In this document: piece after piece, positions 4,018-52,000 of the stretch
Layout: the number at the start of each line of letters is the position of its first letter
Numbering within the stretch: position 1 is the stretch's first letter
Assembly: GCA_964035545.1 (NCBI GenBank)
Contig: OZ037765.1
Coordinates: forward strand, 34,223,504-34,287,503
From: Bugula neritina
Taxonomy: Eukaryota > Animalia > Bryozoa
Length of the DNA: 64,000 bases
Direction: 5' to 3'
Notes under the pieces: generated by a model
What the model was told of the DNA's origin: nothing
Databases searched by the model: none
What the model saw: only the letters and a program-made list of their open reading frames with translations
Position numbers and translations under genes: made by a program

Positions 4018-7000
4018 ATGGGTCAAAGTGAATCTGTTCCTAAAGACGAATCAAGTTAGTAAATTATATAGATATAAATACTACCAGTTATAGCTGCAGA
4101 ATTTTTACATTATACGCTTTTATGAGTTACATGACATTCAGTTGCAGCACTAGAGAAATTGAGGTAGCCTAAGTTCTTTAATTCTCTTAAAAAGATTTGC
4201 ATTGGGGCGTGGTTAAAAATCTCACGAGAACATAACTCCATTTGTTACATTTCTGATGAATAAATACAAGCTTTTTTCAACTTTGTATTATATACTTTGC
4301 ACCTAACTTTGTGTTGACCACAACTGGGTGCATTATTGTATAATGTTATATACTGACTTATATTATATACTATAACTATTATACTGAAGCTTATATTATA
4401 ATACATCAAAGTATAATATATTGTTATACTGACATATATATTATATTATATCACAAATAAAGTGTTATTATTATTTTATATTATATTGTAGCTATTATAC
4501 TAACCTACATCATGTTACGTTACAATAATTGTAGTAACCTTAGTTAACTATTATAACATGCACATTTTACTGACCTATATTGCATTATATTACATTATAT
4601 TACACTAGAATACTATAACACATTATACTGTACAGAAGTATAAACAACATGGCTACCCTTTACCTGTCATCTGCTATAGTTGATGTCTGCGTCAGTTACA
4701 GGGATGAGTCATACTCTTATAGGTATAAACTGACAAAGTGGGCACAACTTGAATATACATTCAGATTTTATCACAGGATTTCAATTTAATTATCTGTAAT
4801 TTTAAGTAGTTAAAATGTAAAATGTTTATTGTGTAACTATTGCCAGTTATGGTTCTATGCATTGATGGTGTTTACAAACATTCTATTATTATAAACTTTT
4901 ATTTATAAAGTAGTGAATATCTTGTAGGGAAGTACAGTGTGTGGTTCAACACATCCAGTATAGATGGAGCTGATGATGAGTGGATGGAGAATGATATCAC
5001 ATCCTACACTATAGAAGAGATCAATGATATAAGTAGACATCATACAGTTATAACTCATGTTATACTGAAGCATGACATTCTTCCAAATATCAACAAACTG
5101 TTTCCCCATCTCACACATCTGAAGGTATCTGGAGTAGAGAGTGATGCTAACTGGACCAGGTATTATTTTATTATAATATGAAACTATATTAATAAGTGAG
5201 ATATTATCTTGTAGTAGAATGTGGAGTAATCTCCCTTCACAATAACACTAGCTTTAGTAACAATTTTTGTATTATTTACCTTATTTATTGTATTTCTATT
5301 TATGCTTCAATTTAAAGTGAGTTGGTGTCATTCAAACATAGTCTAAACATATAATAGTATAATAGTATGTGATAATTATGTAGAATTAAATATACTGTTA
5401 CACCTGTATATAATTATTATGTTACAGCATATCTTCACTGAAGAATCTTGAGGTATTGAATATGTCATTCAGTGACTTATCTAAAGGTCTACCAAACAAT
5501 ATATGCAGATCCTTACCATCATTGAGAGAATTGTACATGGAGGTCTGTCAACTTCCAACTCTACCAAACAGGTGTGTATTATATTATACATTATGAATTT
5601 ATCTGCACTATCTTTGTTGACTCAACTAGATTCTGTGTATATTATACGTCACAAGTCAATTATTGCATTCTATTCTATTAGATATGTACTCAGATAGAAA
5701 TGGTATGACAAATTCTCACTTATTACTCTAATAAATGTGGACAAGTAAATTATTTTGCAGTATAACTATATAACTATGTTGCATTAAATAGGTTATATTG
5801 AGAACAGGTGATAATACAGACCCTTTTCCAATGCCCCCCCCCCCCCCCCCCCCGGTACTCAATTTCAAGTTAGGAGTTGAGTCCTCTTCAACAGGGATTG
5901 AGTTAAACCATGTTTTAGAGAGAAAACTAATTACAACTTTAAAGTTTGACTGTTATTTAAAATCTCAACTATGCTATGGAATTGTTCTTACAGGAGATAG
6001 ATATTCTGGTATAGCACACATATTAGCAGTTCAAGAAATATTTTACAAACATTTCTTCATAATAAGTTTTGAAAAAAAGTAAATTTGAAAGCCTTTTCGT
6101 GATTTTGGTTATTGAGCAATGCTGAAGAGCAGTTGAGGTATGAATTCCTTTATTTATTTGTTGTGCTGGCTGTCACCACTTTGTTTAGATCTGTTAACCT
6201 TTCAATTCCTTGGAAAAGGGTCTACTGATATAAAATAAGCTATACTACTATTACATTGTTGAGTGAAATGTAGAGTGCTAATGATAATACCCAGGAGTTC
6301 AATAGACTTTGATGATTTTCTATACCCGTGTGTTATATGTTACAGCATATCTTCACTGAAGAATCTTGAGGTATTGGATATATCACATAACTACCTATTT
6401 GAAGCTCTACCTGACAATACATTCACATCCTTACTGTCACTGAGAAAGTTGTACATGATGGACTGTAACCTGCCAACTCTACCAAACAGGTGTGTATTGT
6501 TTAATTGTACATATATAATAATATAGAGTAGGAGAAACTCTACTAACTATACAATATTAATTCATGACTTGGCTGTTAAAATATTATTACTGGAGTGGTT
6601 TGTGCAGTACATGTGTACTTGATATTCAGGTAGATGACAACTCTCAATACTCTGTTAGTAAAAGTATATTTGATGTCATGTTTTTATGGGTTACATGCTG
6701 TGGTTATATTCTTACTAAAATATTATACAACATTTCATACCTGTATGTTATGTTACAGCATATCTTCACTGAAGAATCTTGAGGTATTAAATATATCATA
6801 TAATAACCTATCTGAAGGTTTACCTGACAATGTATTCACATCCTTACTATCATTGAGAGAGTTGAACATGGTGAGGTGTGAACTGCCAACTCTACCAAAC
6901 AGGTGTGTATTATATTAGCCAATCCAAAGATCAGCACCATGAAAGTCAGTCATATGTTGCTGCCTTTTTCTATCAAAACTAAATGCATAAACATTTTACT

Positions 7001-10000
7001 CACTAACATAGAGCCAAATTTTAACTGTATGTTTTTTGACATAATACACCCCAATATAGGGGGCAGGTTGAACTGCCCTGTGGGAAAGTTGAATCAGTGC
7101 GTTTATCCTATAATATAATTTGTTTTATCTATTTTGTAAGTTAAAAAATGACTTATTAAAAAGTAACAATAATAATCATTAAAAGAAATTAGAACAAATA
7201 ACAGAATTTCTGAATGTGATCTGTCATTGTAACCATTCAACATCTCAAAGTAGATACTTTAAAACCCAAGCAGCAGCAGCAGCAAGCTGGCAGGAAGCTC
7301 TTTTTGCAATTCATCCTTGAACAATGTATGCAGATATGAGATGGGGTCCTCTCATATGACATCAGAAAATACACAGTAGCATGGTTGAGCCTAACCAACG
7401 TCTTTCGTTGGCTGTTTGAAGGCTCTCAACTTGATGAATTACACTATCCTGCCTTGCTTTACCGTTATAGGTCATTGTCCAGCTTTGAAACTATGTTGAA
7501 AATATATTCTTGAACTTGACTGGTCTATTAAAACTTGAGAAGCTATGCAAGTTTTTATGAAAATGGCAAATTTTTAATTTGATCATTTTTATGCAAACAG
7601 TGTGAAAAAATCCTCTCTCACCTGAAAACTTCATTTCATACATTTCCATATGTTTGATAATGTTGTGAATTTATGCCGTTAAATCTCAATGTGTTATTGA
7701 GATTAGAGCATAAGCTGGTATATTGCGAGTGTAATATTCTATTTATCTGAAGCAAGATTTCATACCTGTATTTAATATGTTACAGCATATCTTCACTGAA
7801 GAATCTTGAGGTATTGAATATATTAGATAACTACCTATCTGAAGGTCTGCCTGACAATATATTCACATCCTTACTGTCATTGAGAATGTTGAGCATGGAG
7901 AACTGTACACTACCAACTCTACCAAACAGGTGTGTATTATATCATACATTATGAAGTTATCTGCACTATCTTTATTGAGTCAACTAGACTCTGTGTATAT
8001 TATACGTCACAAGTCAATTATTGTATTCTATTCTATTAGATATGTACTCAGATAGAAATGGTATGACAACTTCTCACTTATTACTCTAATAAATGTGGAC
8101 AACTCAATAGATCCCTTTCAGAGGTTCTCAAGATCTCCCTTACATTTAAGAGTTGTGTCCTCCCAAAAAGAAAATAGATTGAACAAAATAATCTTGAATT
8201 CCTTTTTGTGACTTTGGTTGCTGAGCAATGCTGAAGTGCCACTTCAGCATTGCTCAGTAATGAAAATCACAAAAAGGAATTCAAGTTTATTTTTTTCAAA
8301 ATTCTCTTGAAGAAATATCTTCAAAAAAAAATTTTCAACTGCTAATATGTGTGCATATACCAAAATATCCATCTCCTAAAAAAACAATTCTATAACATAA
8401 TTATAATTTTAAGTAGCAGCCAAATGTTAAATTTTGAATGAGTTTGCTCTTTATACAAAGGTTCAACCTACTGACTTTGGGAGGACACAACTCTTAAGTG
8501 TAAAAGAGATATCCGGGCACCTGAAAAGGGTCTATTATTTCAAATGAAATAAGTTATATTAAATTGAGTTACAAATATGTTACAATATTATGCAATGCTC
8601 ATATTGTTGAGCATAGAATGTACAGTAATATTAATAATAAATAGTATAGTTAAATTAACTTTGATTATTTTCTACCTGTATATTTTTATGTTACAGCATA
8701 TCTTCACTGAAGAATCTTGAGGTATTGAATATATCAGGTAATAACCTATCTGAAGGTCTACCTGACAATATATTCACATCCTTACTATCATTGAGAAAGT
8801 TGGGCATAAATAGTTGTAAACTGTCAACTCTACCAAACAGGTGTGTATCATTTAATTACATATATAATAATATAGAGTAGGAGAGACTCTACTAACCATA
8901 CAATATTTATTCATGACTTGGCTGTTAAAATATTATTATTGAAATGGTTTGTGCAGTACATGTGTACTTGATATTCAGGTAGAAGACAACTCTCAATACT
9001 CTGTTAGTAAAAGTAGATTTGATGTCATGTTTTTATGAGTTACATGCTGTGGTTATATTCTTACTGAAATATTGTACAACATTTCATACCTGTATGTTAT
9101 GTTACAGCATATCTCCACTGAAGAATCTTGAGGTATTGTATATGTCAGAGAATAACCTATCTGAAGGTCTACCTGACAATATACTCACATCCTTACTATC
9201 ATTGAGAGAGTTGAACATGAGGAACTGTAAACTGTCAACTCTACCAAACAGGTGTGTATTATATTACATTATGAAGTTATCTGCACTATCTACATCAGGC
9301 GCACTAAACGCTGTGTGTACGAGATTTCTTAAGGCAATTACTATATTGTATCAGATGTACACATATAGAAATGGTATGACAATTTCTCATTCATTACTCT
9401 GCTATATGTTGACAACTAAATTATTCCGCAGTGAAATATGTTATATTGAGACTAGGTATGAATATGTTGCAATGTAAAACTATACTAGAACATAAATGAG
9501 CTATTGAGTAAAATGTGGAGTATTAATACGTATTATAGCTAAATTGACTTTGATGATTTTCTACCTGTATTTTATAGCAGCATATCTTCACTGGAGAATC
9601 TTGAGGTATTGGATATATCAGATAATAACCTATCTGAAGGTCTACCTGACAATATATTCACATCCTTACTATCATTGAGAGAGTTGAACATGAAGAACTG
9701 TGAACTGTCAACTCTACCAAACAGGTGTGTATTATATTACATTATGAAGTTATCTGCACTATCTACATCAGGCGCACCAAACGCTGTGTGTACGAGATTT
9801 CTTAAGACAATTACTATATTGTATCAGATGTACACATATAGAAATGGTATGACAATTTCTCATTCATTACTCTGCTATATGTTGACAGCTAAATTATTCT
9901 GCAGTGAAATATGTTATATTGAGACTAGGTATGAATATGTTGCAATGTAAAACTATACTAGAACATAGATGAGCTATTGAGTAAAATGTGGAGTATTAAT

Positions 10001-13000
10001 ACGTATTATAGCTAAATTGACTTTGATGATTTTCTACCTGTATATATGTTATGTTACAGCATATCTTCACTGAAGAATCTTGAGGTATTGGATATATCAG
10101 AGAATAAGCTATGTGAAGGTCTACCTGACAATATATTCACATCCTTACTATCATTGAGAGAGTTGAAAATGGGTAGCTGTAAACTGTCAACTCTACCAAA
10201 CAGGTGTGTATTACATAATAGTGTAGAAAGATAATTATTGTAATAAATATAAATTATAAATATATTTTTACATGTGTTCATAAAACTCTAACAGATTTGC
10301 TACACTGAGATATATTATAATATTATACTGAGATACATTATAATGTTATACTGAGATATATTATAATACTATATATACTGAGATCTATTATCATGCTATA
10401 CTGAAATATATTATAATATTATACTGAGATATATTGTAATATTATAGGGGTAACAGGGGCACAACGGTCATAGGGGTAGAAAAAGCCGGCGTAAATTTTT
10501 TAGGATGTCGTTGAAGCCTTATAAATTTTTACACTCAAAGGCAAGAAGCCTAAATTTTACTAATATTGTTGCCATTGCTTGTCTCTACAATGCTTAACTA
10601 GTATAACAGCAAACACTGAAATAAATTTTCCTTGAGGCACATTTATTTTCAATTTGGCCACATGGGGCACAATGGGCCACCTGATTATTGCACCCTGATC
10701 ACTGTTATTAGTTTGTTTGCCCAAAAAGTTGGTTGAACTGTTACTAAAATCTATAAATATAGCCATTTCTGACCTTTTTGTAAAATATCAAAGACATCAT
10801 GGTAAGACTACAAACCTACAAGTTGAAGCTCCCCTAATACATACATCTGGTGAGGTTGAAGCTTTGCCATTTTATACATAATACAAAACACTCTGCTGTT
10901 GCTACTTGCTACTAGTAGATAGTCATGATAATCATTATATATTACACCATTGAGGGAATATACATGCATTTGACTGAAATAAATTGTGATTTGCTCATTC
11001 GCTCTCCCCTTTCCGTTCCGTACTCCAGTCACAAACCTCAGCCATGCATGCACCTTAGCTACAGTTCATTGAAAAAAGTTCACTCAGAATTTTTGTAGTA
11101 CATTTTAGTAAAGTTTCTTTTTAATAAACGTTGCTCTGAAGTGAAAATAACAAAACATTTTTAGTTCGAAACAGTAATGATAATGGCACTGCAGAATTGA
11201 GTGACGTGCGTTTGATTTTGCCTTCCTCTGCTATCCGTAGTGGCACAAACCGTACAGCTAAAACATGAATTTTGCTGTAGATCTGAAAGAGTATCTTTAT
11301 TTATTTGTATTATTAAATAAATAAAGATCAGATACAACAAAATACGCAAAACTTCAATATATTTGTTGTGTCCCACCCAGTGGCCCATTGTACCCCGGTA
11401 CCGGGGCACAATGAGCCAATTTTTTCAACATGAAAATTTCATTATTCTGAAAGTTGTGAAAGAGATAGAAACAAGAAACTGGTACCTGTAATAGATAACA
11501 GATGTAGCATTAAGACTAGAGATTATTGAACTAGTAACTTGAAAAACAGACCAATGAGAGCAACAAATGCAAAATTCGGCCGGTTGTGCCCCCCCCCTTT
11601 ACCCCTACTGAGATATAGTATAATGTTATACTGAGGTATATTATAACGTTATACTGAGATATAATATAATATTATACTGAGATATAATATAATGTTATAC
11701 TGAGATATATTATAATGTTATACTGAGATATATTATAATATTATACTGAGGTATATTATAATGTTATATACTGAGATATATTATAATGTTATATACTGAG
11801 ATATATTATAATGTTATACTGAGATATATTATAATGTTATACTGAGATATATTATAATAGTATACTGAGATATAATATAATGTTATACTGAGATATAATA
11901 TAATGTTATACTGAGATATAATATAATATTATACTGAGATATATTATAATAGTATAGTGAGATATATTGTAATGTTATACTGAGATATAATATAATATTA
12001 TACTGCGATATATTGTAATAGTATAGTGAGATATATTACAATGTTATACTGAGATATAATATAATATTATACTGAGATATAATATAATGTTATACTGAGA
12101 TATATTATAATGTTATACTGAGATATAATATAATGTTATACTGAGATATATTATAATATTATACTGAGATATAATATAATATTATACTGAGATGTATTGT
12201 AATAGTATAGTGAGACATATTATAAGGGTAATCAATAAACAGTTACTGTGTGATGCATTGTATAATTAACCTGCCTTATTCCATCAAATACCAGGGAGTG
12301 TAACTCCAAGCATCTATGAAATATAATTACTAAACAATAGAAATTGCAGAGAATCTTATATATTTACTACAGTGGTATTATATTACAAAGTATATTATGG
12401 AATTTTATTATTTATATGTTTATACAAAAGCCTTTTCAAAACAACAATTGTATTTTTGTCTGCGTACAGATTCTACAGAAGTTAGAGGAACTGGACATAT
12501 CGTCAAGTAACTTCACCAATTTACCATCTCCTGTGTACACACTGAGTAGTCTGCAAGAACTGAATATATCTTCCAATTACTCTTTGACATCCTTAGATTC
12601 TGAGATATTACAGCTAACTCAACTTCGTACACTGTATGTTAGAAATTGTGATGCTCTCACCTCTCCTCCACTGGAAGTATGTCAGAGAGGAGTAGATGCT
12701 GTGAAACAATACTACACAGACTTGGCTAAAGGAGTTGGTAGAAGTCTGCCATTTGCTACTATAGCTGTGCTGGGTAATACGATGGCTGGGAAGACCAGTC
12801 TAATCAGAACATTACAGAATGCTGACAGAAAGAGAGTTCTGACCGACAGAGGACCAGATGCTGTGAGAGATGAGGCAACAAAGGTGTTTAATGTTGAAGA
12901 GGTGGAGGTGGATAGTACAGTACTCCGTCTCATTGATATGGGAGGCCAGGAAGTCTATCATATCACTTATCAACTAACACTGAGACAAAATTGCATTCCA

Positions 13001-16000
13001 GTCATAGTAGTCAACATGGAACAGTACGAAGAGGTTTCAAATGAATCAACACACAGAGAAGCTGTTAAAAGATTAGCCTTTAATTACATGTCTCACCTCT
13101 ACCTGGCTAACCCAACCCTGGGTGCTCCAAAACTTATCTTCACACATAAAGATAAGTTTCAAAATGTGGAATTCCAAGAGCTTCGAACGAACTTTCTAGA
13201 CACTTCCAATCAGCTGTGTGAGGAGATGATTAAAGAAGAGAAAGCATTGGGTGGAGAATTTGCTCAAATCAAACATTTTAGTGAATCAACTAAAGGAGTC
13301 TTTCTTGGTGAAGACATTTATGAGGTGGGGAAAGATGATAAGTATGAAGTGTTTGACCTGATCAGGGAGTCTTTTCTTCAAAGCAGTCACCATTTTGTGA
13401 AACCATTACCTTTGGTCTGGGAGGAAGTAAATGAAAAAGTGCTGTCTATTCCCTCTGTGTACAGCACCTTTGATGAGATACTGAAATACGTGCAAACCGA
13501 ACTTCAACAAATCGAATCGAGTCAGCTGGACATAATCCTCACATACATGCATGACTGCGGCAAAGTCTTGTGGTATAAAGATATCAGCTCTCTCCGGCCA
13601 TACATATTCCACAAGATTTCACAAGTCACCAAACTTCTCTGCGTCTTGTATCATCATGATCCTGACATTTGGCAGAGTAGAGTTGACAAGTTCCAGCCAT
13701 ATTTTTCAGAGGATGGGATGCTTGTTGAAAAAGAAGACTTTGAAAGATTTGTTAATCATTTCACTAAGACGGGTTTAATGATGCAATGCCTTCTCACTCA
13801 TCTGGTTAAACAAGAAACACCATTTACTGGTCTGGAAGATGTAAAAGTTGCTGTTTGCTTGCTCCTCACATTCCGTTTGTTATATGGTCCTTTACCTGCT
13901 GATTTCAAAGAGCCCTGTTTTATTGTTCCTCAGTTTGCTAATGACCTCTTTGATACCTCTTACTCTTCGCCAAAGAATATGCTTCTTCGAGTTGAAACCC
14001 AATTCAAGGGCTTAGCGCTACCACAATATGTCTACCAGCAGATGAATGTTGGTTTGCTAGAGTTGTTTTCCGATGAATTTGCTGTGATTAAAGTGAAGAA
14101 AAATGGCGCCAATGTCTATCAAGATGGAATCTACACACAGCTGGTACACGACTACAAATCTAGAAAAGTGTCACTCCACGTGTCATCTAATGCTGCCAAC
14201 ATCAGCAGAATGTGGGAGAGACTCATCACCACCAACAACAACATCCTTAGACATGTTCTAGAAACTTGGAAAGCGAGTAGACCAGTCACTACATGCTACT
14301 GTGCTCACTGTCTTCTGCTAGGACTTCCTTGTCCTAATAAAGTGCTGAATCCTCTGTGGTGCAGTCTTCGCTCCTTGAAACATTCCACACCAACAAGTCC
14401 CAGACTGTGCAGCGGATCTTCAACAACCCTGTGTGGTGATGAGGAGATACCCAGTGCTCTTCTGTATCCATGTACGTGTAATTTTATTTCAAAAAATAGT
14501 TGATTTCTCTGTGGTTTATTTATCAACTTCTATTATTGGAATAATTTTTGTGGTAACTGACAGTTTTTCATTCTCCAGGCAGTCCTCTTTCTCCAGAAGA
14601 AGCTGATAACATAAAAAAATGTGTCAACAAACTGAGATCTGCAAGAGAAGAAACTGCTTCAACTGTCCCTGGTAGGATCAGTTGTCTATCATAAACTGTT
14701 ACTGTTAGAAGTAACATCCTTTGCCTGAGCTCAGTCATATGTAAACAGCAAAGGACAAAAACTCATGACCCTCAGTTATATAGGCTCTCTGCAAAAGCTC
14801 ACACACCTTCAATTGTTTTAATTTATTTGTATATTTATTGACTGAAAAACACTCAAGTACTGATTCGATTCATTGTTTATAGTCCTTTTGATACTTAGTA
14901 TCTGTTACTTAGCACTGAATATATCTCTTTTTCGTTTTATTTTAGAGATGGGTAGAGAAAAGAATTGGTTAACTCAAACTACCTCAGTCCTTGTTGAAAA
15001 CGACAACATCAGTGAATGCTCTGATGTTGAAGAGGAAGGATATGCTGACTTCACTAAAGATGACCTTGAACCTTTCATATCTCTAGTTGAGGGTATGCAG
15101 CTGAAACCTACCAACAATGAACCAGTGAAACAGCTGTTTGACAACGACCGACAGGTAAAACAAGTTTTTTGATTTCTTATTAGATCATTGATTAATATTT
15201 TTTTGATATTATGGCTCTTCATCTAATTTCTATTACATTTCATACTTGATTTGATTAATCCATTTTCTGTTGTCTACTTTTAGTAATATAAAATTGATTG
15301 GTTTGCAGGTTTATGCGATGAGTGACCCTGTTAGAGGTCGTGTCATGATCATAAACAATGAGAGATTCTTTAGAGATGATGGCAGTGAACTGACTGAGGC
15401 AACCCGAGATGGTTCATACATCGACTATGTTAACATCAAAACTCTGTTGAAAGACATGGGATTTGTTGTAGCCAATGAAGATGATCCTCTGTTTGACCTG
15501 AGTAAACAGGTTACTGTATCAATTTCTTATCTTTTCCTGTAGTTTATTCTCCCCAGGCTGTAGCTAGCTGTGATATAGCCTATAGCAAGTATTTTTACTG
15601 CAGAACCGAGGCATTGTATTCCAACAAATCTACAATAATATATTGTTAAATTGTATTCAAATTATTAGTTTTTCTCAGTTCTGAGTTTTAGTTTAGAAAC
15701 AGCAGCACTACTTAATAGTTCATCTTTGTTATAAATGTTTTAGTGTAACTTTGAAGCAGCTTTTGCTCGTGCGTAGAAACATTTACTTATCCAAACTTGA
15801 TTTTACACACCATTATATACTTTTATTTTGCCAGGAGATATTATCAGAAGTGAGGAAGGAGACCACCGACAAAGACCACAAAGATCTTGGCATGTTCATT
15901 CTAGTCATCATGTCACACGGAACTTCTGGAAACATCTTCTATGACAAATACTGTAAACCTGTCAACTTGTCAGAAGTCAAAGATTTACTCTCAGCTAGTA

Positions 16001-17043
16001 ACTTTCTTGCCATGAGAGGAAAACCCAAACTCATCATCTTCCATGCTTGTTCTGGCAGTGAGTAATGCAGAGTTGTTCGTCATGTTACTAGAACTAGCAG
16101 TTAGATTGCATAGTTTCCTATAACTATAACATTAATTAATTTAAGGAATCATTATTTTCAAGATGCCTTATGTTATTGGAGTATGCCTATGAGGAAGTGA
16201 GCTACACCTCATAACTGGAATCCAATAAACAGTGCTGTGTAATAGAGTTCTGCTTGTGAATCCAGTCCTAACTTATTACTTACCAACAAATCACAGAGTC
16301 TACATTATATGTATTTCATATACAGGCAGAGCTGACTTTGGTAATGCTGCACAGTCGCAAAGCCCAGACACCGTCTCACCACCAACGCCAACCCCTCTAC
16401 CCTCATCTTCTGCAACAGCTGGGAGTGAGTCTTCTGCAGGTCAAAATGTGTCTCCAAATATTCACTTTGATAAATTCACTCACCTAGATGCTGATGACTT
16501 CTACATTGTGAAGCCAAGTACAGAAAGTTAGTGAGAAGAAAATTATATTTGAGTTGACTAAAACTTTTATTGGTGCAAATTAAAATATTTGTTGCATGTA
16601 AATAAAACTATAGTAAGAATTAAATAGAAAGTATTTCACATATCAATTTGGCCTTCATATTTAACTGCTCATTTTCATGTGTTGCAGCTTACAAGGCTGG
16701 TAGGAATGAGAATTATGGTACCTGGTTTATCAGAATACTGGTGGCTACATTCTACTGACACAGCTGTCACAGAGATGTTAGTGAGCTGTTTAGGATAGTA
16801 AGTACTTCAGTATTACTCTTTGCATGATACTGTGGAGCGTGTTGAGTCATCAGCTTTATATTTCTCTTATATTTATACTTACAGATACAAGACAGAGTTA
16901 GACGAGTCAGTATTGCATATTGTAAGAAGACAGGAGATGAAGCAGCTGGTGGTAATGTACCTAATTGTCAGGAATGTACTTTCACTCACCTCAGAAAACT
17001 TTTCTTTTTTCCAAAGTTTCATGGCAGACAACTCCCACAGTGA
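4018..17043 (+). CDS. Gene A: myristoylated LRR-ROC-COR-caspase (ROCO family, MFHAS1-like core with fused C-terminal caspase); ~1540 codons, one in-frame TGA at 16756-16758
   Basis: Manually spliced GT-AG exons with consistent phases: 4018-4054, 4928-5159, LRR cassettes 5428-5571, 6346-6489, 6759-6902, 7786-7929, 8697-8840, 9108-9251, 9581-9724, 10060-10203, [putative micro-exon 12243-12249], 12470-14471, 14579-14671, 14946-15154, 15309-15509, 15835-16057, 16326-16526, 16688-16797, 16885-17043. Motifs: MGQSES, LxxLxLxxN/C repeats, [54 protein letters not shown]. The exon structure is mirrored in gene B. Confidence 0.85.
5818..6223. mobile_element. MITE related to 8106-8536
   Basis: AGACCCTTTTCCAA..TTGGAAAAGGGTCT termini; internal GAGCAATGCTGAAG shared. 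Confidence 0.65.
8106..8536. mobile_element. Palindromic MITE in LRR intron
   Basis: TIR AATAGATCCCTTTCAG.. / ..CTGAAAAGGGTCTATT with ~65-bp imperfect arms and an internal hairpin (~8195-8290). A related element lies at ~5818-6223. Confidence 0.7.
10303..12225. repeat. ~23-bp satellite (ACTGAGATATATTATAATGTTAT)n, split by the 10447-11605 insertion
   Basis: Direct reading; the same satellite sits at the equivalent position in gene B. Confidence 0.93.
10447..11605. mobile_element. Non-autonomous TIR element (GGGGTAA..TTACCCC, TA TSD; Tc1/mariner-pogo-like)
   Basis: Inserted at a TA inside the 23-bp satellite; internal GGGGCACAATGGGCCA-type motifs. Confidence 0.8.
12470..14471 (+). CDS. Gene A large exon: last LRRs + LRR C-cap (SPPLEVCQRG) + ROC GTPase + COR
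   Basis: ORF 12344-14503. P-loop [10 protein letters not shown]3 DMGGQEVY, G4 THKD, COR-type [13 protein letters not shown], terminal CYCAHC. Acceptor tacag|ATT, donor CCAT|gtacgt. Confidence 0.92.
15309..17043 (+). CDS. Gene A caspase (peptidase C14) domain exons
   Basis: YAMSDPVRGRVMIINN..TRDGSYID; LVIMSHG; RGKPKLIIFHACSG; DADDFYI; GRNENYGTWFI; RKLFFFP. TGA at 16756. Confidence 0.9.
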
Positions 17044-20000: not shown

Positions 20001-20494
20001 AGAATCTTGGAAAGAAGAGACTTTGTGTCTGGACAAATGAACTTTCTAACTACAAGGACTGGAAGAAGAAACTGGTAAATCTCTCACTTTGAATATTTCA
20101 CTTGTTTTGTGATTTATAAGATAATATGTTTACAATAACACAATTTGTTGGTCATTTGGTGGAGTATATTTATAGCATTGGAAATGTTGAAGTAGTGAGA
20201 ATAGAATATAGAGAATGATAACCTAATAATGGTTGGTTCATAATACAAGTGTAACTGTTGTAGTTATCAACTGAGGTGACTGAACTGGTAGAAGTAGAGA
20301 AGACAGAACCACTGGTGGTCACATCTAATAACTGTGTGTGCTGGTTGTCTCATGTGGAGGACACTTCACTGTCTGTCCATCTGCTGCCTCCAGATCTGAG
20401 AGATGCTGACGTGGAGATTAGTCAGTTTAAAAGTTACAGTTGGAGTAATAGAACTGAGATTGTCTACATTGTGACTGTTGATGTGAGTATCTCA

Positions 20495-20824
20495 ATGTGT
20501 CAGTGTGGTGTCACAATGTGTCAGTATGGTGTCACAATGTGTCAGTATGATGTCACAATGTGTCAGTATGATGTCACAGTAATCAGTATGGTGTCACAAT
20601 GTGTCAGTATGGTGTCTCACCTAATAAGTAGAGTGTCACAGTAGAGTGTCACAGTAGAGTGTCACAGTAGAGTGTCACAGTAGAGTGTCACAGTAGAGTG
20701 TCACAGTAGAGTGTCACAGTAGAGTGTCACAGTGGAGTGTCGCAGTAGAGTGTCGCAATAGGGTGTCGCGGTAGAGTGTCGCGATAGAGTGTCACAGTAG
20801 AGTGTCACAGTAGAGTGTCACAGT
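20495..20824. repeat. 21-bp (ATGTGTCAGTATGGTGTCACA) then 13-bp (CAGTAGAGTGTCA) tandem repeats in NOL11 intron
   Basis: Direct reading. Confidence 0.9.
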
Positions 20825-25435: not shown

Positions 25436-25507
25436 ACTCCCTGTGGTGTAATGGTTAGTAGGCCTGTTGCCAAGTAGGAGGTCTCAGGTTCTAATCCTAG
25501 TGGAGCA
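25436..25507 (+). other. tRNA-derived sequence (SINE head or tRNA pseudogene)
   Basis: A-box TGGTGTAATGG and B-box GGTTCTAATCC at tRNA-like spacing; stems imperfect. A similar tRNA-like head lies in both CAC..GTG copies (~30982-31042, ~45467-45530). Confidence 0.45.
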
Positions 25508-40000: not shown

Positions 40001-42771
40001 GTACTACCCTGAGTATGACTTTCTGTCAAGTCTTTGATGTTTTTGTCTACTTGCTCAAATTGTCTAGCCATATTTATGGCAACCTCTTCAGTTAGGTCTT
40101 CAACATTCATTTTCTGCATTTCACGACTGCAGTTAGTGTCTGTGATTCCTACTACAATTCTGTCTCGCATTTGCTCTGATCTATTGGAAAAATCACACCT
40201 ATCTGCTATGTCATTTAGAGACCTAACATACTGTTCAACAGTTTCTCCTTGTTGTTGGCAGCGCCTGAAGAAACGAGCTCGTTCATAAATCACGTACTTA
40301 CGTGGAGAAAAATACTTCTGAAAAGCTTCAGATACTTTTTGATAGTTTTTAACATCTTCATCCGACAGTGCTAAACCATTGAAAATACTCTCGCTTTTAT
40401 TTCCCATACAATAGAGAAAGCTGTCAACTTGCAACTGTTCTTCTTCTTGATTGAGCTTTGACAGTGTCCTATAACGACTCCAGCGAGCAAACCATTCAGC
40501 CCAGCCAGACGGATCAAAGTCGAACTCTTTAGGGGGGTTAAACTTAGCCATAGCGATAAAACACACTTTAACTTTGTAAATTTAAAATAGCTAATAACTT
40601 TAACTTGGTTTCAGCAACACGTACTGGCCACCATGTAATATTATGGTTGCGGATGAAGTGGATTATATTTTGTTAATGAACACGAGCAAGTATTGTATTT
40701 AACATGGCGATAACTTTATTCAAACTGCAGGTAACCTTGACCTAATAAAAACGTAACATTATAGCGAGTACATTATAATACAACACTTATATTAATATCA
40801 CAATACCATTTAACAATTACTGGTTAGTGAATTACATATATAATTAAATGAATTAAAATAAACATATGATAAGCAGATGTGAATTACTACTACAGTATTA
40901 GAATAAGAATACCAATACAATTATGAATTATTATTATTAATAATACAAAATTATATTAAAATAATAGGCTAATAATAATACTACACTTTATATAATGACA
41001 ATGATTATCATTATGATTATATTATTATTATTGATATTAATAATTAATTTAATACTAAAATATTAATTAACATAATACTAATACTTATACTTATACTAAG
41101 TTTAATAGTAATAGTAATACTAATAGACAATAGACATAGTAATAGAACTAGTAGCACTAAGTTTAATAGTTATACTAATAGTATTACATTTACTATTAGT
41201 ATTAATATTAGTATTAGTAATATAATTATAATTATAATAAATGTAATTCAATACCTAAAGTTAAAATGATATCGTAATCTATAAGTTAATATATAATTAT
41301 CACTATAAGTATAAGTATATTAATTATTATTTATATTATTAATATTAATTAAACGCTATTAGTATTAGTATTACTATTAGTATTAGTAAAAGTGATACTA
41401 TTACTATTAGTATTACAGCATTACTATTACTATTGAGTATTACTATTACTATTAGTATTACTATTAGTATTAGTATTACTATTATTAATATTTCTATTAA
41501 TATTATTATTTATTAAATTTAATCGTTAATATGATTTAGATTATTATTTTAATCGACAATTATTTAGTTTAAAAATGCTAATAATAATTTATAAGCAGAT
41601 TGAGCTTACCCATCTCTAGCTTTATTTGTTATATTGGAAAGTCGAAGTGAGAATTTTAGGTTCAAGCAAAAAGATATAAGCGGTTCAGTTGAAGGGGTGT
41701 ACTTGTAGAGTTGAAGATATCACGTTGGTTGTAAGGGGTGAAATAGACTAAGTACTTAACACGTTGCCGAGGTTTTCTTAATGCAAGATTATTTTAATTT
41801 TAGAGTTGTGTCATTTTTTAACTAAAACCTATGCTTCGTGCATACACAAAAGTATTACGCAGCGATTACTAAAAAAATTGCTCGGTTAAGTACTTTTCCG
41901 CCGTTTTTGGAGAAATTTCCGCTTTTCCGTTTACGCAGTTTACAAAAACCGGTCAGATCAAGAGTTAAATAAAACTAAATTATTCTTATTCAATAATAAT
42001 ACTTTTATATAGTAGGTCAACTTACTACCTTTTCGTTATGTTACAGCATATCTTCACTGAAGAATCTTGAGGTATTGTATATACCAGGGAAAAACCTATC
42101 TGAAGGTCTACCTGACAATATATTCACATCCTTACTATCATTGAGCGAGTTGAACATGAGTAGCTGTAAACTGTCAACTCTACCAAACAGGTGTGTATTC
42201 TATTATACGTTATGAAGTTATCTGCACTATCTTTATTGAGTCAACTAGACTCTGTGTATATTATACGTCACAAGTCAATTATTGTATTCTATTCTATTAG
42301 ATATATGTACTCAGATAGAAATGGTATAACAACTTCTCACTTACTCCTCTAGTAAATTATTTTGCTGTGTAACAGTTTATATTGGCACCAGGTGTTATAA
42401 TTTTGCAATTATAGTGCGTGTGGGTCTCTTATTGTGCAACGAGATTACAAACTTTATCCTCGATGAATACCACGATTAATAGAATTGAATATAAGCTTTA
42501 TTTACAATATAATAATACATCCAGTATCCCAACTATCACAAACATCTATCTCTTACTACTCTGTTACTCTGACTGCAAAAACATGAGTCAGCTGCGCCGC
42601 TGGGGGTCTCACGTGATCCCCAGCTGATTGGCTGGGTTACACGTGGACAAAATGTACTACGCTGGCCACTACACTGCCCCCTCCAGCAGGAAGCCTACCT
42701 TCCTGTTAACATAAAAAAACAATTAGTATATTTCACAAATGAAAAAGGATGTACACTCTCAGGCCGACCGG

Positions 42772-42860
<89 letters not shown>

Positions 42861-42938
42861 CTTCCTGTTAACATAAAAAAACAAGTAGTATATTTTACAA
42901 AAGAAAAAGAATGTACACTCTCAGGCCGACCGGCCTAC

Positions 42939-43031
<93 letters not shown>

Positions 43032-46000
43032 AACAATGTAGATATAAAAGAAAGAGCATCTAATCGACTAAACAAATACTATGGAACGTACTTATATAAA
43101 AATGTCTATGCACATAATCTTGGGAACGGAATGTGATTGTCAAAGATGAGAGGAAGAGACACCACCTGCGGGGTAAAGTATAAAAACAGCTGGATGGATT
43201 CTAAAAGGGGGGAAAAGGTAGAAGAAAACGTCATCCACGACACCGAGGCTTGTCACGCAGATGGATGTCGGGGCAATGTGAGAGTCGGACACTCAGTCCT
43301 TGGTACTCCTCTTGAGCTGGGCCACAGAGTCCCAGAGAGATCTAAGCTCGCCTGCAGCGGCCAAGATCCTGGGCGCTAGTCGCTGGATCTCCCACTGAAG
43401 CTCGTGGGTCCTTTGTTTCACTTCTTTGAGGTTTTTGGCTATAGAGGAGTGCCGGGTGGGTGAGGAAGATTGCCAACATCGTTTTCTTGACGGCGGGGAG
43501 AGACGGGAGAAGGCGAGCTCTTCCTGTTGGGAACTTCTATCCGCCGAAGGACCACTCTGGTCTGGGTTCGGGGTCGAGGAACGGTTTGGGTGGGGGGTGA
43601 TGAAGGCTTCTTATATCCGGGGGGCTTGGTGACGGGTCCTTGAGTAACGGCCCTTGGGGTAGGGAACCCTTGAGATAAGCGTTCATAACGAACGCGGTCG
43701 GAGATGAAAGGTTCGATTAAACCTAGGAAGGTGGGGAAGGAGAGCTCATCAACGTCGTAGAGATGTCCGGGGTGACATTCCAACGTCCGTTGATGGCGGG
43801 GGATGTAGTCCCTGTGATAACATTTCCAGCATATAGCCTCCGCCGTCCCGCCTCACCAGAGAATGGCCATGCTTGCTGACCTGGAAGATTTCACACTGTC
43901 TTAATCTGAGCCGTACGTCACGCCCCATCTTAGGCCAATACCACCGGAGTTGTAATTTGGCGAGCACCCTCTGGACTCCTGCGTGAGCCTGTTTGTGTGC
44001 ATCCCATATCAACTCCCGACGGATGGCAGCTGGGCAGACTACCCTCTTTCTCTATGGGTGTCTGCTGTTCGCCGCCAGAGTCATGGTCAGCAGACCATCT
44101 GGCCCGATCCGCAGTGACTCCCAACGTTGGCTGTACAGCCGTAACTCGGCGCATCCCTGCCTGAGTTGTTTTTCACTGGGTCACCTCCCTTCCTTCTTGG
44201 CCCGATATACGTCGGCTACCACTCCTGGAAGGTTTTCCTGGAGTCTTCGTAGCTTCCTAACGTTACCGGCCAAGACAGGGTTGGCGCGGAGATTTTGCAC
44301 TACCTCCGGAGGCGTGCCAGCCTTCTGTCGGAGTTGACCCTGGTCCTAGTCATACTCAATCCTAGGATGGTCCAGTGCTTCTAACTCAGATCGCGGGGGA
44401 CCTCTGTCCCTCCTTTCGATTTGAGGCACTGCTTACATCCCTTGTCTGGTCGCCGGCTCAATCCATCTGCATTGCCCTGCTTCTTACAGGTCGGTGTTCG
44501 ATCCGGTAGGAGAACTCAGCCAGAATCTCGAGCCACCTGGCGACCTGCACAGTTAGTTTAAGGTCATTACTTTCCAGATTCAAGCACTGCTTTATGTTAT
44601 ATATAAACGGTTTCCGGGGGATAGCTCGAACAGTTTTTGTCTCACATTAACAAATTTTACATGAAAAGATAGCTCTTGCATTCCTCTTTCATATACTTTT
44701 CTAATTTTTCAATAAAAAATTTTCTGAGAAAGTTGTTGCATAATAAGTAAAATTTTACACCCTCCATGTTCCACTGCTGTAGCACAGGGGATTCATTTTA
44801 TAAAGTCTAAAAGTTAAACTTGACATTCCTTGATATGTTTTCTCTAATATACTTTCTTTGTTTTTTGAAATTCTGTTTATGCTCTTCACAATTTGGTAAA
44901 AACATACACCATTTTGCAAGTTTCACTGCAATTTTCTAAATTCTTCATATGGTGGTTCTAGCTACGCTCCTGTGACTAATTATAACATTCCTAGTACGTT
45001 TGCCGCTCTGCGCTATCACAATAACATATAGCACCCTCTCGCACAAATTGGCAATCTATTGGATTTCTGCCAATATAATGTTCCCTGTTTTACATTAGCG
45101 CTTAGCTGAACCATCTCACTATGTTACAATAATATATTGAAAATGCCTCAGCACAACATAATTCTTTGTTTGTTTGGCAGAGTTAATTTCAGCTAAATCA
45201 CTTCACTTTGCAGTCTTGTCAGTAAAGGTCTGTCTATAGAGCAGCAGGTGTACTTTCAGTTTCTCTAATTCACATATGATTATTTTAAGTACATTGTATT
45301 CTATAAGATCAATTTAAGGTTTAGTCCAGTGTTCAGTATCTAATTATTATGCATTTATGTTGTCTTACTGTTGAACAAAAGTTGAAAAAAAACTTTACAA
45401 TTATAGCCATATTTATTATACATGCGTAGGATTTGCATAAGTTGATAAAAAAAAATTGCAACAAAACAGGGTTGAACCATGACCAACCAACTCCTCGCTG
45501 ACGCCTCTAACCACTGGACCACACAGTCATCGATATTACAAACGCGCACTATATGAGTAACTATGATTACATGAATATTTCGCGCGCAAATGGGTTATAA
45601 TTATTAGGCTGTCAATTGATGCTGATAGCAGTCAACTGTTGCAATAGTCTCAGGTTACTAGCAAAGCTAATGGTTTTGAACAAATAACCCAAAAGTTTAA
45701 AAAATAAGTAGCTTGCGTAATGCTAGCTACAAAAACAGGTCTGAAATAGACTGGTAAAGCAAGCTCTTATTGTAGAGTTTGCAGATGTGCTCTAAAATAA
45801 AACTTAAACTGTATGCTATTACATAAGTATTTGTATGCAAGAGATAAATGGACATTACTGAGTTTCTGGAAAACAACATACTTGAAGTTAACTTTGACAA
45901 TGGTGTGTTATTTTCATCATACACTAGCACAGATAGGGCCTATAGCATAAATCTCTAATCATATGAATCTTTATGAAGCCCACAGCTCATGTAAGGGTGG

Positions 46001-49000
46001 CAAATGTAATTTGAAACGAACAATTATGTTGCTGCATTGTGTCTAAGGTATATTAGAGAGCAGAATTTGGTTTTACTAGCCTACCCCAACGGCATTCTAC
46101 AATGCAGCTTATATGCTGGCAGTTGTAATAAGTACTGTCAATAGCAAGGTTACTATCACTGCTAGCTCTGTGCAGTATGTAACCTCTTGAATAATTGCGC
46201 CAATTTTAAACTCTTGGAAGTTGGCCAAGTTATCATATCGCAGCCAGCCACCGGAGACAAAGCATCAGAGCTATTCATATAATATTATACTGATGCACTT
46301 GGTAGCAGAGTGGCTAATCTAATATAGTTCATAGTTCAACACCCTTTACTTTGGGAATACAGCCTCTTTTTTTAGGTTTACCTTACAAAGCATGAACATA
46401 TCTAAACTGATATTCTGATAATTTAGAGGTACATTTTGAAAACTAGGTTAATTGCACTTGTTTGCACAACAACAATAATAAAATAGATATTATGCAGTAT
46501 AATAAAAACACACATAATACTATATAATATATTATAATGATAATAATATAATGTTATAAGTACCATTACTGCATTTTATAAATCACATGGTTGCCAAAAA
46601 AATGTATCACAAATTTTGTAATTATACATCAAAAATAAAACTATAGCTAGGCAGCAGGTTAGAATAGAGTAAATTTTTAAAACATGAAATCATGATTTGA
46701 CTATTGTTTTATTTAGGCTAACCAACCTAGGAATACAAGATTGGGTTTTAGCTGACAGTTTATAACATTTAGCTTTTGAGCCAGCAGCACTGGCACTTGT
46801 GAAGTATAGGCAAAGTTAGTGAAGCGAGACTAACTAGCACTCAAATACAAGGCATATTGAGACGCAATAACAAATCAGGAGCGTATAAATTGAAAAGAAT
46901 GTGGAAGGGGGACTATGTTTTTCAACAAGCTATAACTTAAACATGAATTGGTTTTTGAAAAAAATAAAAAAGTATATTGGAGAACATAAGTTTCTTTATC
47001 TTTTCATATTTTTTTTGTTCCTGTGACATTCAACCTGTTCGAGCTATCAGTGGAACATTGTTCATATAGAACATAAAGCACCTGGCAAAGAGCCAGAAAA
47101 TGAAAAGTGTGACCTTAAACTAACTGTGTGGCTAGACGGTTCTGCTCACTTGCAAAACCAAATAAAAGAGGAGTGGTCCGTACGCAGCCGGAACCTTCTA
47201 CTGTATAGATAAGGTCTAAAGTGCTTCACTGACTTGATTACTGCCAACAGTTCCTGGCAGGTAGTGCAGTAATTTCGTTCAGTGGGTGAGAGAGACTTGC
47301 TGTAGTAGGCTACTGCTACTTCTCGGCCCTCCTGCACTTGTGACAGCACAGCGCCAACATTCTGGTCACTGGCGTCGGTATCAAGTATGTACTCCAGAGC
47401 GGGGTCTGGGTAGGCCAGGATAGGTGCCTCCAGCAGGCGACCCTTGAGGCAGTCGAACGCCCTCTGTTCGACTGAAGTCCACTGCCATGTTACTCCCTTT
47501 GCGGTGAGCCGATTTAACGGCTGTGCCACCCCCGCAAAGTCTGGTATATATTGCCTGTAATACCCCACCAGTCCCAGGAAAGCCCGGAGCCCAATCAAAT
47601 CCTGGGGGGTAACACACTTTTCTACAGCCCGTACTTTTTTATGATCGGTCGCCACGCCATGGCGGCTGACGACGTGCCCCAGGTAGTTCACCTTCGGCTG
47701 CAATAGAGCGCACTTGGAGGGTTTGAGTTTCAGACCGGCATCTCTGAGTCGTTCGAAAACCTCCCGCAGACGACTGATGTGTGTCTGAAAGTCTGGGGAG
47801 ATCACTATGATGTCATCGAGGTATATTAGCAGCGTCTTCCAGTGGAGCCCACTGAGGACCTGTTCAATGAGTATCTGGAAGGTGGCGGGTGCGGAGGTCA
47901 ACCCAAAGGGCAGCACCTTCCACTTCCACAGCCCGTCCCGTGTGATGAACGCTGCCTTTTCCTGGGCGTCGGGACTCAGAGGGACCTGCCAGTAGCTGCT
48001 CAGCAAGTCTAATGTAATAAAGTACTTGCTGCCGGCCAAGGCGTCCAGAGATTCATCAATCCGGGGTAAAGGATAGGCGTTCTGTATGGTTACGCTATTT
48101 AGTTTGCGGTAATCCACACAGAACCACCAACTGCCGTCTATGTGCTGGTTCTATGAGGCTGCGGTCCAAAAGATCCCGGACTTGTCGGCTGACCTCCTTT
48201 TCCGGTCCCAACCTCCTCGTGGGTTGCCGGATAGGGACAGTACCCGCAGTCAGCGGTATCTCATGACGGACCGCCTTAGTCAGGCCCACGTCATGGTCTC
48301 CACTGCTGAACACGTCAATGTACTCATGCAGCAACTTAGCCATAGCCGGCGCTCCCCCTTGCTCGTGCAACCATCACAGGCCATCTCGTACAACTCCTGG
48401 ACGTGTGGTGGGACGGTCCCCGCCCTTTGGACGGGCGCTGTCGGGGACCTTCCGTCGCGTCTCCGAGCAACAGTCCTATATCTTCCTCCTGGACAGAATG
48501 AAAGCGGCATAGTACAGACCCTGACGGTAGCTTTACCGCCTCCGAGAAGGGATTGACACACTGCACCAAGATCTCTCCTCGTTCAGGCAGCCGATTGAGG
48601 CTGCTGGCGAGCTGGATTTTCTCGTGCGCGCCTTCTAACACCCCTAGCCCACAGATTCGGCCGTTGTTCACTCTGCATTGAATTGTAGCCTGGTATTTCA
48701 CAGTTCCGTACTACCTGCACACCTCCCACTAGGTGACGACCAGACTTGTCGACACAGGTGAACTCCTTGCCGGCCATCAGTATGGCAGACTTGCTGAAGT
48801 CGATGCGGCACCCGTTTCGTTTCAAGAATGGCATCCCTAGTATAGCATCCTCTTCTAGTTGGCTGATGGCAAAGGTTTCCTGGATCACCTGGTCGCGGAC
48901 GCGTCCAGTCAGTTTTATGATACTGTAGAAGGGAATGCACGAGCCATCGGTCAGTGTGCCATATTCCCCGGTATATGGTGCTAGCTCCCTTTTCTCCTTG

Positions 49001-52000
49001 GGACAAAAGCATCAAAGACACGACGGCTGAGGAGGTTCATGGCACACCCGGAGTCTAGCAGGAAAGTGACGGGCTTTCCGGTCGCTTTTCCTACTAAGAA
49101 ATAGCTGTCTCCGCGCGGTTGTACCCTTACTCCCCCTGCGTGCTCAATCCCAGCCGGGTAGGGCCGTGCTCGTCCGGCCCCCGGTTTGCGTGGCCTGCGG
49201 TGACAAGGAGTTCGTCTCGGAGGCGTGACCTGTTCCCCTCCGATGTCCGGATGGACCTCGCCAGCCGTTTTTACCTCTGGTAGCCGGTCGAAGCGGTTAG
49301 TGAGTGGCAGGGTAAACGGGTCCGGTCGCCACACTGGTCGACTGATCCAATGAGGTGCCTGCCACTCGTGAGGGGCATGACGCAATGTCCGTACGGATGA
49401 CCTGCATTTTCCGCCTCTGGAATCCTTCATTTTCGGCCCGCGGGGTTTGAAGGTATCTGCGGGCTGTGAGAGTTTAACCCCTTTCCAGACTGTAGGAGAT
49501 GTCCGTGTTCGCCCATTTCCAACACAAGGCAGTTGGCCTTGGAGTCGCTACCCTCGGCCTCAAAGGTCCTTGAGTGGGCTCTGTTGGGTTGGCATGGGCT
49601 GAGACTGCCACCAACTTTTCCAGCAACTTTTCCGGTCAACCTCCGCCCTTAGGGGAGAGATGGTAGTGGCAGCAACTACTTAAATAGGAGTGTCTGGTCC
49701 AGGTTCCACGGTGATTTGTGGGCCCAGTGTAGTTGTTTGGCCAAGAGATAGGCCTCACCTTCGTGCAGGGCATCCTCTATTGTGGTCACCCTTCTTGCTT
49801 GAAGCTGGTGGTGGAGACTCAAGTCATTGAGGGACTGCACGAAGGCGTCATAAGTGTAACGCTTCCGGTGTACTTCCGGCAAGTCGCTATTCGCGATCTG
49901 TGCCAGTCTCTTCACCGTGGTAGCATGGTCTTGGAGGGGGATGCGCACTTGCTCACCTTCCATGTGTTGAGCTGTTCTTTCTGCCATGGTGTATTCTATT
50001 GTTGTCTAGATCTTTGCATTGCCACAAGTCAGAAGATCCCACCGCTGCCACCACTGTTATAATTTTGCAATTATAGTGCAAATGGGTATCTAATTGTGCA
50101 ACGAGATTACAGTCATCCTCGATGAATACCACGATTAATAGAATTGAATATAAGCTTTATTTACAATATAACAATACATCCAGTATCCCAACTATCACAA
50201 ACATCTATCACAAACATCTATCTCTTACTACTCTATTACTCTGACTGGTACTAACTACAAAAACATGAGTCAGGCGGCTCTCTGCGCCGCTGGGGGTCTC
50301 ACGTGACTCTCAGCTAATTGGCTGAGTTACACGTGGACGAAATACACTACGCTGGCCACTACAAAGGTATAAAATTTGTTATAATATAAAATTATATCCA
50401 TATAAGTTAGATACTCTCTTTTAGCTGAGTGTAATGTGAAGCTATTATACATTTCTCTTTCTCTTTGAAATAACCCAAGTTTTAGTAGCAACTGCTGTAT
50501 TGTTTATCTGACTCTTAGTGGTCAGATCAAGAATTAAATAAAACTAAATTATTCTTATTCAATAATAATACTTTTATATAGTAGGTCAACTTACTACCTT
50601 TTCGTTATGTTACAGCATATCTTCACTGGAGAATCTTGAGGTATTGAATATATCATGTAATAACCTATCTGAAGGTTTACCTGACAATATATTCACATCC
50701 TTGCTATCATTGAGAGAGTTGTACATGAGGTACTGTGGACTGTCAACTCTACCAAACAGGTGTGTATTATATTATAGTGTAGAATAATACTGTAATAAAT
50801 ACAATATATAAACATATTATTAAATAATTGTGTAGAAGCTTCTAATCTTTTGTGATGTACATAAATTGACTTGTATGAACTAATTACATTATATAAATCA
50901 TTATAGACAATATATGTGATGTCATGTCTTTACTATTCTATTCTATCAGATGTACTCAGCAAGACATGGTGTGACAACTTGGAACTTTTTACTCTGATAA
51001 ATATTGGTATATAAAGTTGCTATAATATTATGAAATGTTCATAGGTGACCTCTTATGATACTGTTGAGTAGAATGTACAGTATATAGTTCAATTACCTTT
51101 GATGATTTTATATCTGTTTATTTTATGTTACAGCATATCTTCACTGAAGAATCTTGAGGTATTGAATATATCAGGGAATAACCTATCTGAAGGTTTACCT
51201 GACAATATATTCACATCCTTGCTATCATTGAGAGAGTTGTACATGAGTCACTGTGGACTGTCAACTCTACCAAACAGGTGTGTATTATATTATAGTGTAG
51301 AATAATACTGTAATAAATACAATATATGAACATATGATTAAATAATTGTGTAGAAGCTTCTAATCTTTTGTGATGTACATAAATTGACTTGTATCAACTA
51401 ATTACACTATATAAATCATTATACATAATATATGTGATGTCATGTCTTTACTGTTCTATTCTATCAGATGTACTCAGCAAGACATGGTGTGATAACTTGG
51501 AACTTTTTACTCTGATAAATATTGGTATATAAAGTTGCTATAACATTATGAAATGCTCATAGGTGACCTCTTATGATACTGTTGAGTAGAATGTACAGTA
51601 TATAGTTCAATTACCTTTCATGATTTTCTACCTGCATGTTATGTTACAGCATATCTTCACTGAAGACTCTTGAGGGATTGAATATATCAAATAATAACCT
51701 ATCTGAAGGTTTACCTGACAATATATTCACATCCTTACTATCATTGAGAGAGTTGTACATGACGAACTGTAAACTGTCAACTCTACCAAACAGGTGTGTA
51801 TTATATTATAGTGTAGAATGATACTGTAATATATAAAATATATAAACATAAGATCAATATAATTGTGTAGAAACCTATGGTAGAAACTTAAGACACACAG
51901 GATAGTTAAGGGCAACCTTTTAGCTGCAACTGTCTTGCTGAGGTTTGCATTGTAATCATATAAAAATTCAGTGCCAGTAAAATAAAATCTCACCTAATTG

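Follow-up and report, generated by a model that had tools for sequence, protein, structure and literature searches.

Among described systems in which leucine-rich repeat (LRR) exons are shuffled, the closest are the ROCO genes of the brown algae Ectocarpus and Saccharina, whose 72-nt phase-2 LRR exons are shuffled, show selection at concave sites and give rise to splice variants (PMC3341825, PMC11378527). Somatic recombination is not reported for these algal genes (PMC3341825, PMC11378527). In bacteria, LRR-AP-GTPase (Roc)-COR conflict proteins with variable C-terminal effectors, caspases among them, have been catalogued (PMC8195603). Here we describe two tandem genes, A and B, in a 64,000-nt stretch of the genome of the bryozoan Bugula neritina (GCA_964035545.1, contig OZ037765.1, positions 34,223,504 to 34,287,503; hereafter the window, GC content 35%), in which 144-nt LRR exons, referred to as cassettes, precede Roc, COR and caspase domains. 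Exon-cassette diversification has so far been described for brown-algal ROCO genes, and our search of the literature, the coverage of which was incomplete, returned no published account of this bryozoan family or of cassette shuffling in animal ROCO genes. We consider it probable that the cassettes constitute the germline-diversified sensor arm of two LRR-Roc-COR-caspase paralogues, A broken and B intact, that belong to a large bryozoan family.

Two tandem ROCO genes and their relatives

An earlier reading of the DNA, made from the letters alone (the sequence-only reading), had presented 15 symmetric cassette exons as one locus. The exons are exactly where it placed them: all are on the plus strand (first 5428-5571, last 51650-51793), 144 nt long, flanked by AG...GT, stop-free and in phase 2-2, and its lists of variable residues in the first and second LRR match ours exactly. 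The single locus, by contrast, resolves into two full neighbouring genes with eight cassettes in gene A and seven in gene B, each gene having its own start and Roc-COR-caspase exons, so that a complete Roc-COR-caspase unit stands between the two cassette sets. The sequence-only reading made no mention of a caspase at the C terminus or of the damage in gene A. Each cassette encodes two distinct LRRs, LxxLxIxxNxL and LxxLxMxxCxL, and adds both in frame. A six-frame scan of the window reveals two long Roc-bearing exons with caspase exons behind each, and exon-by-exon phase arithmetic gives two phase-consistent gene models that follow the same plan (Table 1). Gene A consists of a start exon, an N-cap exon, the eight cassettes, a 2009-nt LRR-Roc-COR exon, two linkers and five caspase exons. 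The gene B model encodes 1454 aa, with GT-AG at every site and no internal stops. Sequence searches with the two models were run one exon at a time.

The Roc domain matches Pfam PF08477 above the cut-off in both genes, with the P-loop, G3 and G4 motifs present. The model of the large exon of gene B has a pLDDT (predicted local distance difference test) score of 90, and its top Foldseek matches are LRRK1, the C. tepidum LRR-Roc-COR protein and LRRK2, over ~600-730 columns and with E down to 2e-24. The Pfam COR-A match is weak and occurs in homologues only, and the COR call in gene B is taken from the fold. With Roc and, on this modelling, a tandem COR, both genes are ROCO members with a predicted GTPase cycle, which gives the comparison with Ectocarpus exon shuffling made by the sequence-only reading a firmer footing, as the cassette genes are themselves ROCO genes. 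The caspase exons match PF00656, on separate exons, in both genes, and the closest solved relatives among structural-database matches are CED-3 and caspase-8. The catalytic His and Cys are retained as SHG/HACSG in gene A and THG/EVCSG in gene B, the Gln of QACxG being replaced by His and Glu, respectively. In an alignment by eye against the canonical Asp-specific S1 pocket, the first Arg is present in both genes, while the second is Arg in A and Val in B; three close paralogues carry Arg at the latter position.

Genome-wide we find at least 75 Roc-COR exons, 57 N-cap exons, 122 exact cassette-donor motifs and 137 caspase-exon matches, some of the last lying outside the LRR-Roc-COR-caspase family. 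About 20 family genes fall within 33.8-35.0 Mb of C1. Annotated LRR-Roc-COR-caspase proteins of Watersipora subatra, 1413-1419 aa at full length, have the same phase-2 two-LRR exons and place all of them in one protein. Judged from this shared architecture and exon layout, the design goes far back among cheilostome bryozoans. The two-LRR exons of W. subatra have diverged in length (~123-153 nt) and sequence, and the homogenised state of the Bugula cassettes is therefore specific to a lineage or subfamily. The best named homologue in a length-limited search is a Bugula neritina Roc-COR-caspase protein, at 38%.

These genes resemble the brown-algal ROCO genes in the LRR-Roc-COR order, in symmetric phase-2 LRR exons whose number varies between recent duplicates, in recombination within and between genes, in diversifying selection at concave sites, and in birth and death. 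They differ in the exon, which is 144 nt with two distinct LRRs in Bugula and 72 nt with one LRR in the algae, and in the animal host and fused caspase (the word caspase is absent from the main text of the 2024 algal paper); inverted intronic LRR exons are a further difference, there being none in this window. Splice variants are known from the algal genes, whereas the Bugula RNA consists of short contigs with no attributable skip. With the bacterial Roc-COR conflict proteins they share the sensor-switch-effector order, multiple paralogues and fast-evolving LRRs; unlike those, the Bugula genes contain introns, are diversified through exon cassettes and carry a metazoan-type caspase. The Roc-COR fold is shared with MFHAS1, LRRK1/2 and DAPK1, and one Watersipora homologue is automatically annotated as an MFHAS1 homolog, although the Bugula family has a C-terminal caspase, neither kinase nor death domain, and at least 75 copies. 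Vertebrates have a handful of ROCO genes.

Lamprey and hagfish variable lymphocyte receptors (VLRs) likewise have LRR cassettes with variable concave residues, and their repeats resemble these in sequence. In contrast to the VLRs, gene B is complete in the germline and its cassettes are spliced exons, and we saw no signal peptide or transmembrane exon; a VLR-type identity was rejected on the complete Roc-COR-caspase germline model and on a start that is not signal peptide-like. Arthropod Dscam offers another parallel in its tandem arrays of duplicated symmetric exons. Here, however, the cassettes are chained in RNA and docking/selector sequences were not found, and a Dscam-type mutually exclusive cluster was rejected on the cassette-cassette joints and on complementarity near exons, scored as exact matches, that does not rise above shuffled sequence.

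Probable selection on the cassettes and their exchange between genes

The concave face was mapped with a model of the LRR arm of a Watersipora homologue and standard LRR geometry. In that model the strands correspond to cassette positions 9-11 and 34-36, so the most variable LRR positions (5, 7, 8 and 10) fall where the strand ends, in the turn and in the rising loop. Cassette positions 14, 38 and 39 rank highest in variability, followed by 36, 41, 11 and 16, and almost no variation is seen at positions 8 and 33 or at the equally exposed convex positions. The mapping onto a predicted structure that the sequence-only reading proposed thus puts the top variable sites on the modelled concave face and its edge. 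Its claim that variation is greatest across the ligand-binding face holds for the clustering and is in need of correction in detail, in that LRR position 2 hardly varies in either repeat, position 3 varies modestly, and the maxima lie at positions 5, 7, 8 and 10.

The concave set, fixed a priori, comprises those 12 of the 47 codons that are non-core in the two LxxLxLxxNxL motifs. Of all nonsynonymous differences, 72-73% fall in these codons, against an expected 25.5% (permutation p ~1e-5), and the enrichment persists when only non-core positions are compared (p ~3e-5). The ratio of nonsynonymous to synonymous change (dN/dS) in the concave set is 4.5 for the 15 exons of the window, which bears out the excess of amino-acid change expected from the first reading, and 5.8 for 41 exons; elsewhere it is 0.5-0.7 by counting. 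Bootstrap intervals for concave pN/pS, the corresponding ratio of proportions, are 2.0-7.4 and 2.6-8.8 for the two sets. Across five neighbouring cassette pairs in the window, 35 codon differences are nonsynonymous and 2 synonymous. In a control of 10 non-independent pairs picked for near-identical flanks on both sides, divergence is 2.7% in the flanks, 18% in concave codons and 3.9% at other exon sites. A codon model of the concave partition gives a 2 x lnL (log-likelihood) difference of ~52 against omega = 1; its omega of 27-36 is distrusted because synonymous changes are few and recombination breaks the tree, and only its direction is used. Amino-acid change is concentrated on the concave face and the adjacent loop.

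Cassettes also move between genes. Sequence distance is 13.9 nt for cassettes of one gene and 13.8 nt for cassettes of different genes, and the closest match of a cassette mostly lies outside its own gene. The flank upstream of a cassette usually has another nearest neighbour than the flank downstream (Mantel r 0.29), and the correlation between its two LRR halves is weak (r 0.33). A4, for example, has 97-99% identity with B2, B3 and B4 in the downstream flank but differs from them in the upstream one. Such mosaicism is the pattern that crossovers or conversion inside a conserved exon would give. A copy of gene A lies 67 kb downstream, with 95% identity over 3.7 kb and an identical N-cap peptide, and has nine cassettes where gene A has eight. 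The spacings are 918, 413, 1027, 911, 411, 473 and 479 in gene A and 923, 413, 1026, 912, 414, 476, 478 and 478 in the copy, which thus has one extra 478-bp unit, as would be expected from unequal crossing-over. Five neighbour genes hold 3, 4, 5, 5 and 9 cassettes, the count of 4 being possibly incomplete as the N-cap exon was not found. The germline history of these genes therefore includes gain and loss of cassettes as well as their exchange from gene to gene.

The downstream modules show mosaicism of their own. Two caspase types, ~46% identical in the catalytic exon and exemplified by 15309-17043 and 56260-58348, are interspersed in the C1 cluster (33.8-35.0 Mb), and the Roc-COR exons ahead of both types are 82-91% identical. 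The Roc-COR exon is itself a mosaic, and because its similarity does not follow the two caspase types, swapping of effector modules is suggested. Within COR, a 400-nt block (~nt 1200-1600 of the large exon; ~54760-55160 in gene B) occurs as deeply diverged types with 71-78% identity, which assort independently of the remainder of the exon, otherwise 85-98% identical.

A proposed sensor and the alternatives

On the reading that we favour, the cassettes would normally be spliced serially into one solenoid of ~14-16 cassette LRRs plus the cap and terminal repeats. The near-identical exon framework would prime unequal crossing-over and gene conversion; exchange would homogenise that framework, while selection would retain new binding residues. 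The protein would be cytosolic, possibly anchored to a membrane through N-myristoylation (MGQSES). A ligand on the LRR arm could shift the nucleotide and dimer state of Roc-COR and so bring caspase domains together, with activation by proximity leading to proteolysis or cell death. This signalling scheme is drawn by analogy from Roco and caspase biology, and the likely role is that of a single-chain cytosolic sensor of non-self that activates its own caspase, in defence against pathogens or other non-self, in allorecognition, or in programmed polypide death.

The first coding exons at 1531, 4018 and 28058 all start with MGQSES, which fits the N-myristoylation consensus MGxxxS. Starts in the wider family differ among paralogues (MSQK, MSDSE, MGQRK), and because of this variation membrane anchoring may differ between family members.

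We found almost no molecular description of bryozoan immunity and self/non-self recognition in the literature, and the family is a concrete candidate for such a system, with sensor, switch and protease in one chain as in an NLR or apoptosome and a Roc-COR GTPase in place of the STAND ATPase. It makes testable both the idea of ROCO LRR exon shuffling as a convergent immune strategy and that of a Roc-COR dimer cycle switching on a caspase, which bears on ligand-driven Roco switches such as LRRK2. A larger proposal, which we regard as speculative and rather unlikely, is that bryozoans possess an anticipatory system of immunity or allorecognition so far undescribed, with dozens of receptors drawing on a shared, recombining pool of >100 cassettes, expanded in each colony by skipping or somatic exchange, and with the variable surface coupled to a death protease.

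Several observations weigh against the favoured reading. Synonymous divergence among cassettes (0.06-0.09) is far below mean flanking-intron divergence (0.22-0.31), which itself is close to concave pN (0.29-0.33); the gap points to conversion having homogenised the exons, so raw dN/dS probably overstates selection. By the codon model, non-concave dN/dS is not different from 1. A PHI-like recombination test found no spatial signal (p = 0.92) and is uninformative, and the RNA contigs are too short to be assigned to one paralogue. The Val of gene B at the equivalent of caspase-1 R341, together with EVCSG, may give this caspase an unusual specificity or activity. Finally, the immune role is proposed by analogy, and ligand binding and caspase activity are predicted.

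In a neutral account, recent tandem duplication and relaxed constraint at exposed sites would have produced the pattern with neither diversifying selection nor a receptor role. Exposed LRR sites tolerate substitutions, dS is small and noisy, some family copies are pseudogenes, and concave pN is about as high as the mean divergence of introns. Yet the convex positions are as exposed and almost fixed, concave codons in pairs with near-identical flanks have diverged ~6x as much as introns and ~5x as much as the rest of the exon, and neighbouring cassettes differ at 35 nonsynonymous against 2 synonymous codons, all of which leaves this account very unlikely. Diversity might instead arise within the animal. 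Regulated alternative splicing as its main source, by skipping or Dscam-like mutually exclusive use of cassettes, is in our judgement unlikely, even though the symmetric phase keeps any skip in frame and Ectocarpus ROCO genes show LRR splice variants (PMC11378527). The RNA data are short contigs, with three runs guessed to be RNA, and could derive from paralogues or other alleles, cassette ends being near-identical across paralogues. Contigs of these runs fall almost solely on exons; one, from run X10, splices the N-cap exon to cassette 1 over the predicted 268-nt GT-AG intron of gene A, and loose ends before 4929-4931 show a related upstream exon of a paralogue. A cassette 3' end is placed before a cassette 5' end in loose ends of two runs and in a contig of the third. 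The family is transcribed with its cassettes chained to each other, and these joints argue against strict mutual exclusion. One contig links the end of the N-cap to sequence on cassette 8, which may be the first cassette of a paralogue as 5' ends are near-identical, and a transposon 15 nt before cassette B2 could lower its inclusion; no skip assignable to the gene A/B locus was found in the short contigs. The splice sites are strong and uniform in all cassettes, docking/selector complementarity (exact matches near exons only) is not above shuffled controls, and Watersipora models contain every two-LRR exon. Mutually exclusive splicing was accordingly rejected on the chained joints and the absence of a docking/selector signal near exons.

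Still less weight falls on a VLR-like process, highly improbable here, in which somatic rearrangement or conversion of DNA assembles the cassettes and uses damaged copies, gene A for one, as donors. The cassette framework is near-identical in DNA, synonymous sites included, and gene A retains eight intact cassettes despite two downstream lesions. However, gene B is complete in the germline rather than an incomplete acceptor locus, the window contains no minus-strand, orphan or inverted cassettes, and motifs resembling recombination signal sequences are not enriched (of 12 heptamer matches in the window a single one lies close to a cassette, with no nonamers nearby). The exchange, moreover, takes in intron flanks, as ordinary meiotic events do, and the lesions of gene A, unique in the genome, are probably recent. 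Of the two routes to a repertoire that the sequence-only reading envisaged, recombination among cassettes stands in its germline form, and combinatorial skipping or somatic recombination finds no support in the RNA contigs, motif searches or Watersipora models. Germline diversification of the sensor arm remains the reading that we prefer.

Gene status, feature positions and repeats

Gene A carries two lesions. The acceptor of its Roc exon is TG, where eight other copies have AG, and the TG form was found once genome-wide. In its fourth caspase exon a TGA at 16756-16758 replaces a codon that is sense (AGA or AAA) at 13 paralogous sites, and takes away the end of the caspase small subunit. Because each lesion is unique in the genome, both are probably recent. 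The eight cassettes and the Roc-COR frame are undamaged, and alternative in-phase AGs near the acceptor make splice rescue of the Roc exon possible. The sequence makes it most likely that gene A became a pseudogene or null allele recently, and gene B is the functional candidate of the pair.

Table 1. Positions of gene parts and inserted elements, numbered from the first letter of the window
Feature	Position	Strand	Remarks
Gene A, whole	4018-17043	+	
Duplicate of gene A first exon	starts 1531		gene model
Gene A first coding exon	4018-4054	+	MGQSES... start; gene model
Gene A N-cap exon	4928-5159	+	phase 1-2; gene model; RNA splice to cassette 1
Gene A cassettes 1-8	5428-10203	+	144 nt, two LRRs, phase 2-2; starts 5428, 6346, 6759, 7786, 8697, 9108, 9581, 10060
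Gene A large exon	12463-14471	+	three LRRs, Roc, COR; acceptor TG instead of AG at 12461-12462
Gene A linker exons	14579-14671, 14946-15154	+	
Gene A five caspase exons	15309-17043	+	premature TGA 16756-16758
Gene B, whole	28058-58348	+	
Gene B first coding exon	28058-28076	+	MGQSES; gene model
Gene B N-cap exon	28445-28673	+	gene model
Gene B cassettes 1-7	28894-51793	+	144 nt, phase 2-2; starts 28894, 31976, 32568, 42047, 50616, 51134, 51650
DNA transposon-like insert	29398-31960		~130-bp terminal inverted repeats, TA duplication; 15 nt before gene B cassette 2
Ty3/Gypsy long terminal repeat (LTR) retrotransposon	36401-40786	-	in gene B intron; identical 153-bp LTRs, 5-bp target duplication
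Second copy of transposon-like insert	44548-47129		inverted
Gene B large exon	53547-55549	+	three LRRs, Roc (P-loop [17 protein letters not shown]), COR; Pfam Roc, fold model
Gene B linker exons	55713-55805, 55987-56177	+	
Gene B five caspase exons	56260-58348	+	catalytic His and Cys present (THG, EVCSG)

Transposon insertions account for the wide spacing of the gene B cassettes. The Ty3/Gypsy element has a single long uninterrupted gag-pol open reading frame and is, by its sequence, very young. A second, fragmented retroelement extends over ~42700-50000, with a reverse transcriptase/RNase H open reading frame at 47146-48117 on the minus strand, and is split by one copy of the 2.56-kb element with inverted repeats. 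The first-exon region of gene A is duplicated in tandem (876-1863 / 3338-4387). AT-rich minisatellites with a 23-bp unit are found at homologous sites of genes A and B, ahead of the Roc exon (11606-12225 and 52707-53302) and behind the last exon (17720-17884 and 60955-62323), with copy numbers that are very different between gene A and gene B.

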